This document shows positions 30,086 through 46,088 of a stretch of 64,000 nucleotides of DNA, one piece after another. The position numbers were made by a program, and so were the translations under genes. A model generated the notes under the pieces. The model saw only the letters and a list, made by a program, of their open reading frames with translations, was not told the DNA's origin and searched no databases. The first letter of the stretch is position 1, and the number at the start of each line of letters is the position of its first letter. Source of the DNA: Klebsormidium nitens (Eukaryota; Plantae; Klebsormidiophyceae); assembly GCA_000708835.1 (NCBI GenBank), contig DF236993.1:186001-250000 (forward strand). Direction: 5' to 3'.

Positions 30086-32372
30086 CTGAGACAGAAAAGA
30101 AGGGACGGAGTTTGAGAGTTTTCAAGAGCAAATTCACCCCTTCAGATGCTACCGTAGCAAAGGGCACGGGGTTTTTTGCGAGAAAGGACCTGAACTTTGT
30201 TCACACTCTTCTCTACTGAACACAGTAATGATCATCAACCTGTCGGCCCTGCTGTGAATTGTGACCCTTCATTGTGAGATCTGAAGTGGGGCGCAGATTC
30301 CTTACATTCATGCACTCTCCGCTCCTTTGTTCATGCTGAGTGAAAGGAGTTCCTTTGCACCCACTGCGCAATATGGTCCCTTATGCCTACATTCTGCCAC
30401 CACTTCCTGACAACTCCCATCTGATACTCGGCATACAATTCTCTAGATTTCGGTCCGGCGGCAAAATTTTTGTTACATTTCTCTGTGCTTGACTTTTCTT
30501 GATGCTGAAGCAGGTCCCCTACAAATCTAATAGCAGAAAGAAACAGCGGCCCCATTCCGAAAGAAACAGCAGGCCCCTGAAAGGGTATGATTGCAACCGA
30601 GAGTAGGCTTGCCCCTAACTCTCTTGACACTAGTGAACCCCAGCAATCTCATTAGGAGCATCTTACTAGTTTTGCAGCTAATCTCCCAGTTTTGTCACTG
30701 CTGGTTGCTGCAATGGCGGGGAACCACAAGTGGCCCACCATGAGGCTGCATAACTATCAAGCGGTTGGGCCATTGCCATTTGGCTTCCAGCAAAATGATG
30801 GGCCAGGAATCTGCACTGCAATATCAACATGGATACAGAAGACTGCTTTAACCCTGCCATCAATAACCAATCATCTGGGACTACCACCATCTGAGACGGC
30901 CCTTGCTGCCCTCGCCTGTTCTGCGTATTCAGATGCTGAACTGGTTAACAAGCGGCAGTCGATACGTGAGCACTATCCTGCTTAAATAATGATGATTAAG
31001 CAGCGGCTTACACAACATTTGCCAACTTTGTTGTCCTCTCAGGGTCCAGGTTCAGAATTGCTGCTCCCTGCAGAACCTTCTCTGTAGACCAATGGCAGAC
31101 TGTCAGACTTTCAGAGCTCATTCGCCGCAGCAGAAATAGTAATGGAGCCAGGCGCGAGGTCTCTCGCAGAAAGAGAATAGAGAAGCGCTGGGTTAAAAGT
31201 CACATGTTGATTCAAAGCTTGCAAAGCGGACCAAGAAAACTCCTTGCTAGTCCTTCTGGAGTCTTCTTGACCACTTATGGACGGCTGACCTATCAGGGCA
31301 TCTGCTCAACCCGGAAGTAATGTCATTCACCTGGCCCAACGTTGGCTGTTGACCAAACATTCCAGATCCTTTGTACTGCGGAGCTTTCCCCGCCGCCTGA
31401 CATCAGCGCGTGCGCTGAGACCAACTCGCGCTGAGCCTTGAAGAAGCATTCAACCAGCTTTAAAGAGTCAACACAGCCGGCATTGAAGATCGATCCTCTG
31501 AAGATGGTGAAGTACCTTTTAATCTCCGCTCTCACATGCGGAAAGCCATGCCCTTGCATGGAAGCTCATTGCTTTCGAAAAGGGTCAGACAGCAGTTAGT
31601 TCTCAGCTCATGAGTCTGGGTTTACGATGCGTTGTGTTTGCTCAAACCCAGTCGGTCCGCTTCACCGGGTTGCATACAGACCTAGGGTTACCTACGGTAT
31701 TCAAAATCATTCTACGTCCCACAGACTACAGCGCCGGAATGCATGGCGGAGTCCGGTACCGGCCGGTTTCGCAGTCGGTGGGTTTCAATCCTCAAACCCA
31801 GTACGGTTAGCTGCGAAGCAGAGGATGATCCCTCTGCCTGGCTGAATCATGTCCTCCACACAGAAGTATACCCATCACCTGTACTTATGAGTTTTAAACG
31901 CTTCCATTCAATTCCAACGGCCATGTCATGCAGGTATAAATCACCACTAGATTTGTGCGCCACATCATCCGACAATGTCACAGCCACATACACTTTAAGT
32001 GCCTGACGCAAAGCATGTTTGAAAATCATTATGTACGATCAAGTACGCAGCATGTGCATGCAAACCTACTATCATGCAGCCATGCCAGATCGATAATGTC
32101 CGGGCTGATCTCCGCCAATGACCCATACGTACTTAAGGTCGGCGGCAATATTGTGATCGTGAAGGTTACAATATGCAGCAACCAAGGTAGCTGTATGGTC
32201 TGCCGCATTGTGCATTGTGACGCCACCATCCGAGAAACTCAGGACTCTCCGAGGCGTCCACTGTATATTGGGGGCATGGCACAATGTTTTCTGTCAGCGG
32301 ATGGACGATCAAGCCCGCCTCAATGCTTATCAACTCTCCCAACGAATGCCACCTCCGTAAGTGATCCCCGTG

Positions 32373-35300
32373 TCATTGAGGACCTTTCTTTCCGGGCCCC
32401 ATGGGAGGTGAAGCTTGCACAATCGGGTGACCGCCCCCGGCGCCAGGCAAGACTTGCATGTGAGGGGGCCCTGGGTGCATGTGGGGGTGTTGTTGGTAGG
32501 GGCCCTGCTGAAGGTGGGGAGGCGGCGGCTGGCCGGGAACAAAAGGAGCCCCGAAAGGCATCCCTTGCTGAGGGGGCATCCCGCCTGCGAGCAGGCCAGG
32601 AAGAAAGGTGTGGATTGAAGAGGATTAGCCAACCCCTTCTCCAAAAAATGCTGCGAGAAAAAGACCTTGTTCTGGCCCTTGTTCAAGCAAGCACGCCTCC
32701 GAATCTGTTCTCAGAGCGAATGCGACATACAGCGCGACTCAATCCCAGCGCTTGGTTTTTGAGCTTGTAACATTGAAACGGACGGATCAGCTGTCTTCAC
32801 AAGCACCGAACCGCAGCGCCCGCGCAAAGGGGCAGAGCGCCGCATCCTCTTGTAACACGCCAGGACAAGAACAAAAGCCTTGATGTCGATGTTAAAGAAC
32901 GAGATTCGTGTCGACTGTGACGCACGCTGTACCCAAAAGTTCCCCCCGTCGAGTACGATGAAAGCCGTCCAAGCACTTCAAGCTCAATCCAAAGCAACCG
33001 AAATTGACCAGAGAAATGGCAGCAATTTGACATGCTTCAAGGGGGAGTCCGAAGCCTCACCCCTGATCTTTTGTTGTTGGGGCGACTGCTGCTGCTGAGG
33101 TGGCGGCTGCTGAGGCTGTCCGGGGATGGGGGGCTGCCCAGGGATAGGAACAGGCTGGCCCGGCATCTGCAGGACGGCACGTGTCCGATCAGCCATAAGC
33201 CATGATCGCGTCAGACATAATTGATGGCCCCATGATCGACAGGTGGCGCCCAGAATCAGGACGCAGTTGGAAACATGGAGTTCGACGCAGGTTCAGGTTG
33301 AGAACAAATGCGAAATCTAGACCATATCCTACTTCGGATTGACGAGCAACTGAATACACGCCAAAATCCACATAAGCAACAGCGGTCCAGAGCAGATTGC
33401 TACTTAGCGGTTTAACGAGCTGCCAAACCCGCATATCCTTCCACCGGTCAAACAGGAGTCCAAAGCATATGCGACTCAGGGGATCATAAGCAGTACAAAG
33501 CATACGCTTTCCCCGCAGATGGATCCGCTTCACTCACGTATTGAGGGCCCATGATGACGGGCATGAGCTGTCCGTTGGGCATCCGGACGAACTGCTGGCC
33601 CGGCTGCTGCTGCGGGAACTGCTGCACCCCGGGGTACTGCATGAACGCGGGCTGGCCGGGCTGCATGGGGGGGCCCTGGGGGAAGCCCATCTGCTGCTGG
33701 TACATCGGCTGGGGGGGGGGAGGGGGAGGACAAGAATGAGCAGTTGGTTTGAGAAAAGATTCTACAGAGCCGTTTATTGCTGGACTAGGGGTGAGGGGTA
33801 GGGGGTGACACGAAGGTAACAGGTGTTCTATAGTTGGAGTTGCATCAAAGTTGACGAGAGACGAAGGGGAAAAGGACGGAGGTTGGCAAACTTGCTTCTC
33901 AACAGCGGTTCAGACAGACCGGGAGTGATAACTGCGGAGTGATATCTGAGCTTTTGACCGGGAGAGAGCTGCTGCTGGACACATTGGCTGAAGAGGAGGT
34001 GTAAGGGAGAGGTCAGCAGATTTAATCTGGGGGGGTAAGGGGGGAAGGGGACGCGTTTCTGAAGACGAATTTGGATAAAAACCTGATTCAGGTTGCAGCA
34101 CCGACTGACGTCTGCCAAAACCGGCGAAAGCAGCCGCAGTGACCAGAGCGCTCAGCGAGTGGGAACTGCCATGAGTTGCGCATGCTATCTGCTACACCTT
34201 ATTCCGTTGCTGGTCTTTCCAACATCCATACAATATCAGGCTCGAGCAGAGACTGAAGGCTTCGCAGGAGAGCAGACAAGAGTACTTGGATCCACGGCAG
34301 CGCAATAAGCGCACAACGGCGAAAGAAGGAAAAGTGCCATTTCTCACCTGCTGCTGCCCCTGCGCCGGGCGCATCCCCGGCTGGCCCGGCATCATCGGCT
34401 GCCCCGGCACCTGCCCCCCGGGCACAAACTGCGGCTGCTGAATAAACGCCCCGGGCTGCATTTGCTGCATCTGGAACTGGTTGTACTGCCCCGGTTGTTG
34501 CATGAACTGGCCCGGGGGAACCCCCTGGGGGGGCATCCCTTGGTGCATGAAGACCGGTTGCTGAGGGGGCTGCTGCTGAGGGGGGGGATGGTGGTGGGGG
34601 GGGTGCTGGGGAGACGCAATCGGACGGTTGGAGTAGTGGGAGGAGGCGCTCGAGGGGCGGCTCCCGGGGACGAACTCCTTGGCGCCCGGATTGAACTTGA
34701 ACTCCTGTAGGGAGGAAGCGGTGATGTATAATAAGGAAGGGAAAGGAAGGGGAGTGGGGCAGGGAATCGCTCTAACCACTGCTTCAGTTAGCAAGGCCGC
34801 ATCTCGGAACAATAGTGGGTCTCGCACCTCTCCTAGTGAGATCAGTGCCCGGGGACAAAATTAGGAAACTCTGATTACAATTAGGACATCTGCTGTAACG
34901 GGACGAGGCACGTTTGGTTTTCAGACTGTTTTTGCGCAGGATCCGCACAGGTTTGCCGTCAATAACAATTCGGCGCCTACGGCATTGCATAGGGATGCGA
35001 CTGATCGCAAACATGATGTTTGGGCATGTTGGAAACGACTGTGGTTGCCACTGCTCTCTATAGGTAGAAAGTGGCAGGATCAAACTAAGACCACTTCAAA
35101 AAGCTCAGAGAGGTGGCGACAGTATCACTTAAACTTTATACGTTGGCAAGACAAGAATTGGCACCCCTACAGAGTGCCCCATTTGCTCTTGAAACAGACA
35201 CAACCAGACGCTGCAGAGCTATGTCCGTACTCCAAAAGGATCACTGCCCAAGCGATAAAGCTCAAAACAGAAATCAAAACGGCGCCATGAAGAAGAGCAC

Positions 35301-41300: not shown

Positions 41301-42038
41301 CGCAAAGACACCGCTAATGGTCAAGTGATCTATCTACTTTGTTTCTAACCTGCTGGCTCTGTATCTTGAGATTATGAGCGGCAATTGCACGCCCCGTTCG
41401 TGCACATTATGCTCAGAACGGAGGACCATTGAAACAAAAACTTCTTTGACATATCTGTTTGGGCGGCGGGCCACGAGACTTGAGCCCCGCCAGAGAGCTC
41501 CTGAACACATCCGCATAAGCGACAACCGGCAGTCATCTGATTGCAAGTAGAGCATAACCAAACCTCTGACCCTGAACTATTTGGTCAGGGACCTGGCGCC
41601 TCCAAAACTACATCACTCACCAAACTCCCTCCCTTCCTCTGCTTCTCGTGTGTGGAAGATGCCCTGAAAAACGGCCCCGTCCGTTTTCTGCACCTCCACC
41701 GTCTGCCCCACCAGGCACATCATCAATTTGTTGAAATCCTCCTCATGCCCCCCCTCCCGGCGGCCCCCCGCAGGACTGCTCCGCCCCACGGATCCCCCCC
41801 CCCTCGGACCCATCCCATTCGACCTGCCATCTGCACCCCCCCTGCCGTGGCCGTAATGTCCGCCTGATCCCCCCCCACCATGTCTGAGGGGCGCCGGCCG
41901 GTAGGGTTCTGGACGGGGACCCGTGCTGTCCCTGGTTTTGTCGGCAGGTAGACCAGAGTCACTGCTTCTCCGACGACCGGTGACGGGGCCAGAGGGGTAT
42001 GCAGGGCGCTGGGGGGTGGTCGCGTGCTGCTGGCTCAT
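32373..42038 (-). CDS. ATXN2: Ataxin-2-like / CID3-4 PABP-interacting RNA-binding protein
   Basis: Exons 42038-41621, 40899-40748, 40449-40229, 39851-39668, 39237-39058, 38547-38431, 37995-37865, 37245-37134, 36712-36403, 35641-35385, 34704-34348, 33708-33538, 33166-33061, 32584-32373. LSm domain (LVGQTVEVQKTDGAVFQGIFHT), LsmAD (WDQFATNRELFGVRTTFDENFYTT), tandem PAM2 (SKLNPNAKEFKFNPGAKEFVP), Q/P-rich tail. Confidence 0.93.
36250..36362. repeat. Intronic ~26-bp minisatellite (4-5 degenerate units)
   Basis: (g/a)agcaat.tc.ttcca..(t/c)ct(a/c).. units recur. Confidence 0.7.
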
Positions 42039-43903
42039 GGTGGCGTTAAGTTGGTGGGACTCTGCAAATCAGTATGCTTAAACTTGGTGAGTAACAAGCG
42101 ACACTGCTCAATGCACCTGACCAAAGTCGTAATCAATCAAAAGACATCAAGGTCCATTGCAGCGGCTAAAATTGGCAGATCAAGGAAACTGGAAGAAGTG
42201 CTAGCTCACACTGCAACAGGGAATTGATGAAGGGCCAGCGCTCTGACTTGCATTGCATCCTTTCCGACAGGGCAGTGCAACAATTCAGTGAAAACAATGG
42301 ACCTGGTACATATTTGCGCCTTCGAAGTTTCCAGACTTAGCGCTGATATTAGCTGTCAAGGCTTGCAGGTTTTTCTACTTCGGAAGCGTTCTGCAGATCA
42401 AGTAGGCAAACATGGTAACAACATCAAACATCTCAAAACATCTCAGAAGGATTAGACTGGCTTACTTCACACATTATAAGGCCTTAAGACAGAGAGAGAT
42501 AGCTAGAGAATATCTTGAATCAGATGTCAAGGGTGCAGTTCGATAACAAATGTTGCGCCTCTCCAACACATTCTTCAAAATCTGCCATTTCGAAGCAGGT
42601 CGTTTGTTCAATCGCATTCGAGCACTCCTCCAAAATTTCAAAAGATTCAAGCAGATGCAGCCAAAACAGAAAGTGCACTAGGGTATGTGTTCAAATGCAT
42701 TCGAGCCTCCTCCTAGCGTTATGTCCAACCTTTCTTCGCAAAAGTTAGGGTTATTCCCACCCAGCCCAGGCTCTCGAGACGTCAACTCTGGTAAAACCCG
42801 GCGCATTCAACCAGGGTGTGCTGTTCTAAACGTGGTAAAGGTTTTCTCCAAGCAACAGCAGCACTTGAGGGTGGACATGTCTGACCTTGCAGATGATCAC
42901 TCCAAAACTAACTGATCAGTATCAGTAACAAAAGATTAAGAAGGAAGGCAATGATTCTTTTCTCACCGACTCAACGCAGCTGGGGCTGAAAATTGGGGAG
43001 GACAGAGCAGGACAGCTTTGTGTTCAAGGTCTGACCAAACAGGTTGTACACCCAGATGTAGACGGATGTGCACCAAACTTGAACTGAAGCACCCGCGCGT
43101 GACCTGACAGGACTGTGTCTGATTGACCGGTAAGTGTACAGCTCTGCAAACACTGTGGATCAATGAACGGCGCTTCACACAACTCGATACAAATGCCGTC
43201 TGCGCTGGCTGCACCAGTGTAAGCTCCCCAAGTCGAAGCTTCTTTTCCCAGACAATCCACCGTCAGATATCGTCAGACAGCGTTTTGAGGAAGTCAAGCA
43301 AGGGGTGTGCAGGACCTGCAAGCGACCTGCCCCTGAGGAGCGACTCCTGAGGAACAACCTGCAGCAGACACTCATAGGATGCGCTCGTTTGAGGGGAGAT
43401 CGGAGGAAGGAAGGGTGGGTTTTGCTCTTGCCATAGGAAGACGTGCCCTTGTCAATGCAAGCTGGTCAGGCTTATGACATTCAGGGGAACCCTAGAAATG
43501 ATCAGCTCCGAACGGAAAGCGGAGTTACTTGCAGCCGTGCAATGCTTCATCGACGGCTGTACATGCTCAAATGGCAATGAACGCTGGTTCTTCGAAGGCG
43601 GTCCGATGAGTCCAAAGGGTGATCGACGGGCTGTGTCGCCCGTGTTTTCAAGCTTCCCGCCAAAGGTTTTTGACTCGATTCAAAGATCGACAGAGTCTCC
43701 AACTCCAAGTTGTGATTCACAGCGCCTGCCTTGTCGCTGCGCCTGCTTTGACCCAAGACATTCGCAATTCGTTTCAAGAGCTTCGGGAGGGAATGTTGTT
43801 GACCAGATGAGGGCGTGTGGCTGGCGGCCTGAGCGGAAAAGAAGTGTTGAACACGTGCGGTCCGTTTAATCACACAGCCTCTGAGACCGATTGCTCTGCA
43901 AAG

Positions 43904-44962
43904 ATGAAGAGGCGAATGGATTATACTGAAGACATTTTTGCTGCGTTGTGGAATCGGAGCTCTAAAAGGAGGCGGGAGCATTACGGTGCTTCCAAGGATG
44001 AAAGCGAATCAGAGGGGTCAGAGGATGATAGTCAGTGGGAGGGTTCTGATGGATGCCAGTCTAGCGGCAGCCAGTGGGAGGGCTTGGAAGAAGACGAGAG
44101 CCAGTCAGAAGGTTCCGAGGATGCAAGCGAGTCAGAGGATTCAGAAAGCGGCACCGGAGCATGGGACTCGCTTGGGGGCCACTTTTATCTTGGAACGTCA
44201 GGCTGGCAATTTGCTGATTGGAAGACCAACGTGTATCCTGCAACGGTGAAGAAGAAGGACTGGTTTCAGGAGTACAGCTCTCATCTCAACAGCGTCGAGG
44301 AGAACCGCTCGTTCCAGAGTATCCCCTCTGAAGCCAGCATCCAGAAGCTGAATGAGCAAGCGAACGGAGTGAGAGGCTTCAAGTACGCGCTGAGGTTCAG
44401 TCAGTACGGCACACACACCAGGAAGCTGCTCGATCCGAAGGCCACAATTGGGAACTTTGCTTACAACTTGCGAGCCCTGGGAAAGCGGCTGGGTCCGGTC
44501 TTGGTGCAGTTGACGCGCAACTGGAAGATGAACCCCTCTGATTCTCCCGCCCGGCTGGACGCTTTCTTGAGGGCGGCAAAGCCGAAGTGTGCCAAGTGGG
44601 CGATGGAGCTGCGGCACGAGTCCTGGCTATGTGAGTCCATCTACAGCGTCTTGAGGCAACACAACGTCGCTCTGTGCATCCATGACAACGTCGACGTGGA
44701 GGAGCACCCGCAGATGCTGACAGCGGACTGGACGTACGTGCTGTTCCATGGCCCAAGATCTGAGAGCACAAACACGTGGAGCGAGGGGTATGAAAGGAAG
44801 GAGCTACAGGCGCGAGCTAACTGGATTCGCAAGGTGCTCAAGCAGTACAAGGACGTCTATGCCTACTTCCGGAACCACAACGAGGGCCACGCTTTCCATG
44901 ATGCTCTGAAGCTGCGGGCAAGAGTTCTCCCGCTGAAGGAGAGCAAGTCCAAGAAAAGATAG
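43904..44962 (+). CDS. DUF72 (YecE/UPF0759-like TIM-barrel) protein with acidic N-terminal extension, intronless
   Basis: Uninterrupted ORF (ATG at 43904; frame open from 43817) with LGTSGWQFADW..VYP, EYSSHLNSVEEN, LGPVLVQL, AMELRHESW, TADWTYVLFHG, DVYAYFRN..GHA, which is the DUF72 motif order. Confidence 0.88.
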   Translation: MKRRMDYTEDIFAALWNRSSKRRREHYGASKDESESEGSEDDSQWEGSDGCQSSGSQWEGLEEDESQSEGSEDASESEDSESGTGAWDSLGGHFYLGTSGWQFADWKTNVYPATVKKKDWFQEYSSHLNSVEENRSFQSIPSEASIQKLNEQANGVRGFKYALRFSQYGTHTRKLLDPKATIGNFAYNLRALGKRLGPVLVQLTRNWKMNPSDSPARLDAFLRAAKPKCAKWAMELRHESWLCESIYSVLRQHNVALCIHDNVDVEEHPQMLTADWTYVLFHGPRSESTNTWSEGYERKELQARANWIRKVLKQYKDVYAYFRNHNEGHAFHDALKLRARVLPLKESKSKKR

Positions 44963-46088
44963 TTTGTGCAAGATGTGAAGATGCGTTGTACTGTTCGTTG
45001 GATTCACTAAGAAAACGTTCAATAGCCAACTTGAGACTACACAAAATGGTCAGCTTTTGGAGTCTTGGAGGGATGAGTGTGGCAGTGGCAAAAATTGGTT
45101 GCCGGTGAGCTTTCAATGATATGGAGAGCACGAGTGCTCATGTACCCCGTCAAAGGCTAGTAGACTGGTTGGTGTACAGTAGCTTTTTGTAGCCATTTTT
45201 TACTGCCAGTTGTAGAGTAATACGGTACGCTGCTTTTGAGACCTCTGTATTTTAAGTACTGTCGGTCAAGTACACCTGATGAGAAACTTCGTCCATGGCC
45301 TTTATTACCAGCTTTCCTGAGAGGCCAAAATACCGATCCGTGCAGTGGATGAAGCATGCATCATGGTCACCTCACTCTCATGGGTTGACGTTGTGGTTGG
45401 ATGCAAGCCATCCGATCATGCCGAAAGTCTGTTGGCAGACCGGACCTTGATTGCAACTATGGCGGCTTGAATCGCCATGCAGACAGCAAGATAAATCTGT
45501 TCAATGCAGTACCACGTCGACATGTTTACACTCATACGCATGGTTGGAGATTGAATAAGCAATGCCATACACTTTTGATGTAAATTCATCCAGTATACAG
45601 TATAAACGTGAGACCAGTGACTGCAGCCTGCACATGTCATGCAGCTGCGGCTCCGGCTGTCATTTCATGGATGTTGAGGCAGCTTCGCGAAGCGACATGG
45701 AGCAGCCGGGCACAAAATGACATGTGCATGCATACAATGGTCATTGGTTTCATACACGTGCGAGCCGTCTGGCCCTCCGAGCCCTTATGATGCTTCAATC
45801 ATTTCAAAACTTTGCAACCATGCGGGTGACTACCATTCTATAAGTGCATATGATTACCATGCACCCACGCAATAGACTGTGCGCAGCTGACAATGAGTGG
45901 ACTTTAGTTGAAAGTGAAGGCAAAGGTTACAGAATTGCCTACAATGGCCGGACAAGGAGCCTCGATCCTTCGAACATAAGAGATTGCATACAGGAAAGCT
46001 CAACAGATGATTATCGTCAAAAGAACAGAGTAAGCTTCCGATCAGATCCGCAACTGCTGCAATTCAGGAACCAGTGAAAGTACAGCAA

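Follow-up and report, generated by a model that had tools for sequence, protein, structure and literature searches.

An expressed, uninterrupted DUF72 gene with an altered conserved site in Klebsormidium nitens, best read as a divergent streptophyte paralog

Introduction

DUF72/YecE is a very large protein family to which no function is assigned in the searchable papers, and for which genome context and fold point to DNA-damage processing. An enrichment of DUF72 genes in the vicinity of polB2 damage-response genes has been described, and the resemblance of the family to UVDE is at the level of the fold (PMC11791011). An in silico model docks one member, Tm1631, on DNA and has its Lys72, Arg191, Asn239 and Tyr48 touch the phosphate and the lesion (Konc et al. 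2013; PMC3828134), and DUF72 crystal structures are without metal ions (PMC3828134). Here, we analyze a DUF72 gene of the streptophyte alga Klebsormidium nitens that lies on the plus strand of a 64,000-nucleotide stretch of contig DF236993.1 (positions 186,001 to 250,000; hereafter the window, in whose coordinates all features are given). The encoded protein, hereafter the divergent copy, differs from its relatives at positions that are otherwise invariant in the family, and it is best read as a fast-evolving, lineage-restricted duplicate of a streptophyte DUF72 gene.

Results and discussion

A full-length DUF72 domain with replaced family-invariant residues

The divergent copy is encoded by the largest open reading frame (ORF) of the window (43817-44962), one of only two there of at least 220 amino acids (aa), which spans 381 aa when read from a mechanical GTG start. 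The first in-frame ATG, at 43904, gives a protein of 352 aa beginning MKRRMDY, and this ATG rather than the GTG at 43817 is probably the real start; the public gene model KFL_000440340, to which the window protein is 100% identical across the aligned parts, begins at the same Met. Residue numbers throughout refer to this 352-aa protein.

Consistent with the original prediction, which was made from sequence alone, this is a true DUF72 gene, with a single full-length Pfam match (PF01904, E 5.9e-51, 174 bits against a cut-off of 25.3) that covers profile positions 1-216 of 217. The sole solved relative found by sequence search is Tm1631 (1vpq, E 1.6e-15), and a score of 38.7 bits against a cut-off of 412 for NCBIfam PRK10302, the E. 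coli YecE equivalog model, shows that the protein is not the E. coli YecE equivalog. An AlphaFold2 model built from a 106-sequence alignment reached a mean predicted local distance difference test (pLDDT) score of 81.7, with block means of 81-98 across the barrel (about aa 90-340). A Foldseek search of the PDB with this model ranked three DUF72 entries first, with 1vpq as best match (E 5.8e-16, TMt 0.82, root-mean-square deviation 3.0 over 258 columns) and 1ztv and 1vpy next, followed by SacUVDE with 6-4 photoproduct DNA (4gle, E 5e-6) and by sugar isomerases and epimerases of the same superfamily. The divergent copy is thus predicted to retain the (beta/alpha)8 DUF72/UVDE-like fold, and the likeness to UVDE and endonuclease IV that had been proposed for it is backed at the fold level by both Foldseek and the literature.

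Conservation was scanned in an alignment with 307 other DUF72 proteins, mostly bacterial and metagenomic and including plant sequences. The divergent copy differs at 27 of the 99 positions with conservation of 85% or more in these proteins, and 10 of its substitutions (Y103F, Y138Q, W149L, K164R, P204T, P205R, R231K, R280L, N323R and D325H) are found in none of the 307; K164, R280 and W149, all replaced here, are 100% invariant in the others. Every motif change on which the original prediction had built is real against this set: VEINNTFY has become VEENRSFQ, ALKFS has become ALRFS, QLPP has become QLTR, YxRFHG has become YVLFHG and YFNND has become YFRNH. The replacements stand beside many conserved positions that are kept (G97, S99, G100, E132, N134, H171, Q202, E235, R237, H260, D261, H268, Y278, H282, Y296 and N324), and the acidic and histidine core of E132, E235, D261, H171, H260, H268 and H282 is among them. 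By homology, the divergent copy is a DUF72 member, with a site that is non-canonical in its sequence.

To place these changes, residues were mapped by hand onto Tm1631 from a HMMER alignment (in which the PDB number is the chain index minus 12) and the residue lists of PMC3828134. Six of the nine putative active-site polar residues of Tm1631 are kept, with Glu42, Asn44, His79, Gln114, Glu143 and Arg145 corresponding to E132, N134, H171, Q202, E235 and R237, while the other three are changed, Lys72 to R164, Arg191 to L280 and Asn239 to R323. Also changed is Tyr48, the second residue of the proposed lesion-probing "two-tyrosine" motif, which corresponds to Q138. Position 280 lies on strand 7 (aa 276-281) and position 323 just past strand 8 (aa 317-322); as strands 7 and 8 adjoin in a (beta/alpha)8 barrel, the loss of an arginine on strand 7 and the gain of one on strand 8 may be compensatory, a suggestion drawn from strand adjacency.

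Orthologs and purifying selection

Orthologous loci were found in other Klebsormidium-like genomes (L002:5602-6738, L003:2608-3735, L004:424-1578 and L005:2578-3750), and all four are syntenic with the window, the neighboring exons in L002 being 77-88% identical. L005 encodes an intact protein of 390 aa (P0343), and L003 and L005 are separate contigs from the same Joint Genome Institute metagenome (3300060284). Most of the replacements are common to the four orthologous proteins (P0001, P0002, P0004 and P0343) and were therefore fixed before those Klebsormidium lineages split. Of the substitutions, P204T is confined to K. nitens, with QLPP still present in P0343.

Ratios of nonsynonymous to synonymous substitution (dN/dS) were estimated by the Nei-Gojobori method, with nonsense codons excluded from the counts. 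For the DUF72 part, every deep pair (dS 0.43-0.58) gives a dN/dS of 0.12-0.21, below the value near 1 that, in a silent gene, would have refuted the original prediction, and for the acidic N-terminal tract, which is kept in frame in L002 to L005, it is 0.15-0.48 in the deep pairs. The DUF72 part and the acidic extension have been under purifying selection, which for the extension supports its being coding.

An unspliced transcript and a corrected gene model

The stretch is contained in 20 public runs from seven studies, and the contigs of four of these studies were compared with the genome. Over the DUF72 gene, all four contig sets (X1, 43721-45323; X4, 43706-45296; X9, 43697-45128; X11, 43730-44033 and 44013-45281) are without a single difference from the genome and without splice joints; their ends differ between assemblies, at 43697-43730 on the 5' side and 45128-45323 on the 3' side. 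The minus-strand genes on either side are cleanly spliced in these runs, with CT..AC joints at 42061/42967, 46227/46471, 46546/47013 and 47151/47493, so the assemblies are RNA-derived and the collinear contigs between these spliced neighbors establish that the DUF72 gene is transcribed and, as had been proposed from its large uninterrupted frame, intronless. The gene is expressed as an unspliced mRNA.

These data also correct the public gene model. KFL_000440340 (305 aa) lacks aa 156-202, a central part of the DUF72 barrel, owing to an annotated 141-nt intron (Table 1). Because the RNA contigs of four studies and all orthologs retain this stretch, the intron is unsupported, and the public model is probably in error or, at most, represents a minor isoform. 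Two short upstream ORFs lie within the 5' leader, one of 5 codons (ATG at 43793, stop at 43808-43810) and one of 20 codons (ATG at 43807, stop at 43867-43869). The gap upstream of the transcript may serve as a bidirectional promoter.

Table 1. Features of the DUF72 gene and its surroundings, in window coordinates
Feature	Position	Strand	Basis
Gap of about 215 bp that separates the neighbor's 5' end from the DUF72 transcript start; putative bidirectional promoter	43484..43696	.	Contig ends
Unspliced transcript, about 1.6 kb	43697..45323	+	RNA-derived contigs, four studies
Pair of short leader ORFs that precede the ATG at 43904	43793..43869	+	Read from sequence
Coding sequence, 352 aa, stop codon included	43904..44962	+	First in-frame ATG
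Basic/helical segment at the N terminus (aa 1-29) carrying MKRR and a KRRREHY cluster (resembling a nuclear localization signal)	43904..43990	+	Orthologs, AlphaFold2
Acidic Ser/Glu/Asp-rich tract, aa 30-88, predicted disordered	43991..44167	+	Composition, AlphaFold2
DUF72 triosephosphate isomerase (TIM) barrel, aa 94-340, family-invariant residues remodeled	44183..44923	+	Pfam, AlphaFold2, Foldseek, conservation scan
Stretch spliced out in KFL_000440340, 141 nt, GTGAGA...GCAG, V156-Q202	44369..44509	+	Alignment gap (P0003)
Basic C-terminal tail LKESKSKKR	44933..44959	+	Sequence, orthologs

The upstream neighbor (41834-43483, minus strand) is a spliced gene transcribed divergently from the DUF72 gene, with contigs that end at 43405-43483, and its orthologous exons at L002:1178-3523 encode LsmAD and SM-ATX domains (ataxin-2-like). 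The second ORF of at least 220 aa in the window lies at 31955-32770 on the plus strand (271 aa).

Terminal extensions

The barrel is flanked by acidic and basic extensions of a eukaryotic style, which the orthologs conserve. At the N terminus, KRRRE[HY]Y is invariant in all five orthologs, and a helix is predicted at aa 7-26 with low to moderate AlphaFold2 confidence. The tract that follows holds 22 Asp or Glu and 16 Ser residues, and one Lys or Arg, among its 59 residues, with pLDDT below 50 for residues 26-64; it looks like a disordered, possibly phosphorylated interaction region. The original prediction had described this part as an acidic SQWEG-repeat N terminus. The acidic tract and the peptide motif are indeed there, with SQWEG at aa 43 (44030-44044) and aa 56 (44069-44083) and SQSEG at aa 66, but Tandem Repeats Finder detected no DNA-level tandem repeat in the tract, so the "repeat" holds at the level of the peptide motif only. 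The basic tail, KESKSKKR, is present as predicted and is kept in the orthologs as KESK[SP]KK[RQ]. The KRRR and KSKKR clusters, which are kept in all orthologs, would be compatible with nuclear import.

A canonical paralog and the place of the divergent copy among streptophyte proteins

K. nitens has a second DUF72 gene, KFL_002210160 (P0006, 526 aa), on another scaffold, whose protein carries the canonical motifs and is 48% identical to the divergent copy. Its residues 5-526 are encoded in one exon (L001:4001-6398). The annotated first exon of KFL_002210160 gives about four residues, and this start and the single intron may be annotation artifacts. The GC content at third codon positions (GC3) of the divergent gene is 0.70 overall, in keeping with the GC3-rich codons first noticed, and 0.75 within the domain, against 0.78 in the paralog. 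As both Klebsormidium copies are uninterrupted, the absence of introns is not a sign of fresh transfer and cannot diagnose retroposition; an intronless gene in an intron-rich genome is by itself no evidence of recent transfer.

Phylogeny was inferred by maximum likelihood in IQ-TREE (LG+C20+F+G4 with posterior mean site frequencies, 85 rows, 250 columns). The five divergent orthologs form one clade with support of 100/100 and a stem of 1.28, and they have as their sister group, at 96/95, a pair of canonical Klebsormidium proteins on a stem of 0.32, making seven sequences in all; the divergent stem is thus about four times longer than the canonical one. The Klebsormidium clade is in turn sister to a land-plant clade (itself 99/99) with support of 92/92. 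A quick tree that had separated Klebsormidium from land plants was discarded, as the careful mixture-model search joined them. This placement does not support a recent form of the bacterial or giant-virus acquisition suggested by the original prediction: the gene is not nested in a donor clade, and its composition is like that of the paralog. Canonical, vertically inherited green-plant orthologs, which the original prediction had named as refuting it, do exist for the family, but the divergent copy stands apart from them as a lineage-restricted duplicate to which this refutation does not apply.

The land-plant proteins come from Adiantum, Ceratopteris, Cryptomeria, Selaginella, Diphasiastrum, Welwitschia and Ginkgo, and the three best matches of the canonical Klebsormidium domain are gymnosperm-type (Welwitschia and two Ginkgo-like clusters, 57-60% identity). 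The Adiantum nelumboides ortholog spans 4.4 kb for 374 aa, so the land-plant gene has introns. No angiosperm or bryophyte DUF72 protein appeared among the best 120 matches of any search, and no paper on plant DUF72, including papers on horizontal gene transfer (HGT) and plants, was found in the searchable literature. The land-plant clade of gymnosperms, ferns and lycophytes (P0068, P0119, P0121-P0127, P0157 and P0328) is 55-60% identical to bacterial proteins. In the tree and in the searches, the streptophyte clade as a whole sits among bacterial sequences at this same 55-60% identity, and an ancient bacterial origin of the whole streptophyte DUF72 clade is plausible.

Proposed function

By analogy, DUF72 proteins most likely recognize or process nucleic acids whose backbone is damaged or unusual, a proposal that draws on the UVDE-like fold, the enrichment near polB2 and the docked Tm1631-DNA model. 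The gene neighborhoods of three close bacterial homologs (L006, L007 and L008) revealed no shared operon. In the Marinobacter neighborhood (L007:5001-6276), a gene with a Mut7-C nuclease domain (PF01927) begins 2 nt after the DUF72 homolog and DUF488 is found nearby; the L006 and L008 contexts showed no Mut7-C link.

For the divergent copy, simple decay seems to us less likely than a shift in substrate specificity or a loss of catalysis with binding retained, because the acidic and histidine core is intact and the contacts made by Lys, Arg, Asn, Tyr and Trp, once replaced, were conserved in their new state. The protein would be a probably nuclear, UVDE-like nucleic-acid-binding barrel, as far as the analogy with Tm1631 carries. 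The gene, which might be called DUF72b, is a nuclear K. nitens gene and a divergent paralog of streptophyte DUF72/YecE, lodged between spliced eukaryotic genes and syntenic in Klebsormidium-like genomes. Replacements at 27 of the 99 conserved positions became fixed along its stem branch with the Glu/Glu/Asp/His core kept, and the remodeled state was afterwards held by purifying selection. In the scheme that we propose, the barrel would bind a phosphorylated, probably nucleic-acid, ligand with altered specificity or without catalysis, the strand-8 gain perhaps offsetting the strand-7 arginine loss; the basic KRRR and KSKKR clusters would direct the protein to the nucleus, where its disordered acidic Ser/Glu/Trp tract could mediate protein contacts or phospho-regulation. 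The gene would be non-essential, since related genomes carry null alleles.

A more specific version of this scheme is conceivable. Acidic-aromatic strings serve in other eukaryotes to anchor repair factors on TFIIH p62 or on histone H2A-H2B. The divergent copy could be a Klebsormidium-specific, chromatin-tethered DNA-damage sensor, whose barrel reads a lesion or structure without the ancestral chemistry and whose SQWEG/SHWED tract is an acidic-aromatic docking string. This is highly speculative, and we give it the least credence of the ideas discussed here, yet if true, it would offer the first functional handle on DUF72.

Alternative explanations

Taken as a whole, the observations are in our view moderately well explained by a selected, active-site-remodeled streptophyte DUF72 paralog whose nucleic-acid-binding barrel has changed its specificity or lost catalysis. 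Several points weigh against this explanation. The streptophyte node is supported at only 92/92, and an approximately unbiased (AU) test keeps a tree that joins the canonical copy and land plants without the divergent copy (p 0.39), so the duplication may be older than the split of Klebsormidium from embryophytes. No activity has been demonstrated for any DUF72 protein in the searchable literature, and the mechanism proposed above is therefore an analogy with the in silico Tm1631-DNA model. In addition, outside K. nitens only one of the four orthologous loci is free of nonsense codons, the other three having a single one each, at different sites (TGG to TGA in L002, four codons before GGHFYLG; TGG to TAG in L003, within GTSGW; CAG to TAG in L004, in the acidic tract), and within the close L003/L004/L005 group dN/dS is 0.41-0.94, which is compatible with decay. 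These last points, together with the loss of residues that are 100% invariant elsewhere (K164, R280 and W149), could mean that the active-site changes are a loss of function and that the gene is a dead enzyme or a pseudogene in the making, still intact and transcribed in K. nitens. Yet the derived residues are themselves conserved across the orthologs, deep dN/dS is low, RNA contigs come from four studies, the barrel is modeled with high block-mean pLDDT, frameshifts are absent from all five loci and both K. nitens and L005 have an intact ORF. The three stops, moreover, are all confined to the first 30% of the coding sequence (a chance of about 0.03 if placed at random, a post-hoc figure). We consider a decaying duplicate unlikely on this evidence; the simplest reading of the stops is recurrent recent loss. 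They argue against an indispensable role, and some lineages may be able to do without the gene.

The origin of the gene admits two further accounts. An mRNA of the canonical paralog could have been reverse-transcribed, inserted beside a bidirectional promoter and then diverged, which would fit a single-exon coding region among multi-exon neighbors, a parent on another scaffold and a transcript start close enough to the 5' end of the neighbor to borrow its promoter. The parental aa 5-526 lie in one exon, however, so the missing introns are uninformative; the N-terminal extensions of the divergent copy and KFL_002210160 have no detectable similarity (E >1), and any poly(A) or target-site-duplication remnants would be eroded at dS >0.4. 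Such a retrogene seems to us quite improbable. We assign slightly less credence again to a direct, fairly recent acquisition from a bacterium or giant virus, independent of other plant DUF72 genes and followed by domestication. The gene is intronless and the family mainly prokaryotic, the best matches beyond Klebsormidium come from metagenomes or bacteria and are 45-46% identical, compared with 38-42% in land plants, and the AU test does not force the sister placement to the canonical copy. But a lower identity to plants is expected from the fourfold longer stem, the sister relationship to the canonical copy lies inside the streptophyte clade, GC3 is close to that of the paralog, the coding region of which is also uninterrupted, and synteny in several Klebsormidium genomes makes the gene old within the lineage; no viral relative was found among the best matches of the protein searches. 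Duplication within the streptophyte family followed by fast evolution thus remains the preferred account of the divergent copy.

Implications and comparison with known systems

Under this preferred account, K. nitens offers a natural experiment in one organism, with a canonical DUF72 copy beside a selected copy whose active site has been remodeled. The contrast between the kept Glu/Glu/Asp/His residues and the replaced Lys/Arg/Asn/Tyr/Trp residues suggests a division of the site into core-chemistry and specificity positions. More broadly, the non-flowering streptophytes have a DUF72 clade of their own that is very similar to bacterial sequences, of which we found no mention in the searchable literature.

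Compared with UVDE (SacUVDE, 4gle) and endonuclease IV, AP endonuclease 2 barrels of the xylose-isomerase-like TIM-barrel superfamily, the likeness is at the level of the fold (Foldseek E 5e-6, template modeling scores of 0.46-0.54) and extends, by published analogy, to the DNA-binding groove and the lesion-probing residues. Sequence-level searches of Pfam and the PDB gave only DUF72. The tyrosine that matches the proposed lesion-probing Tyr48 is a glutamine in the divergent copy, and whereas UVDE and endonuclease IV have a trinuclear metal-binding set of His, Asp and Glu residues, DUF72 structures are without metals (PMC3828134).

With the solved DUF72/YecE proteins (PF01904; Tm1631, 1vpq; EF0366, 1vpy and 1ztv), the divergent copy shares the same TIM barrel and a full-length domain match, and it keeps their GTSG motif and the other retained residues listed above, from E132 to N324. 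Unlike them, it has an insertion of four to five residues after the HG motif and bears a 93-aa N-terminal extension, basic then acidic, together with a basic C-terminal tail.

Its nearest relatives in the tree are KFL_002210160 and the land-plant DUF72 proteins, which are 38-49% identical to it and have N-terminal extensions that are not alignable with its own. These relatives keep VE[IV]NNTFY, ALKFSR, QLPP, Y[VIL]R[FY]HG and YFNND, whereas the divergent copy does not. Like the divergent copy, they are eukaryotic nuclear genes with N-terminal extensions, and KFL_002210160 further shares with it an uninterrupted DUF72 coding region and a similar GC3.

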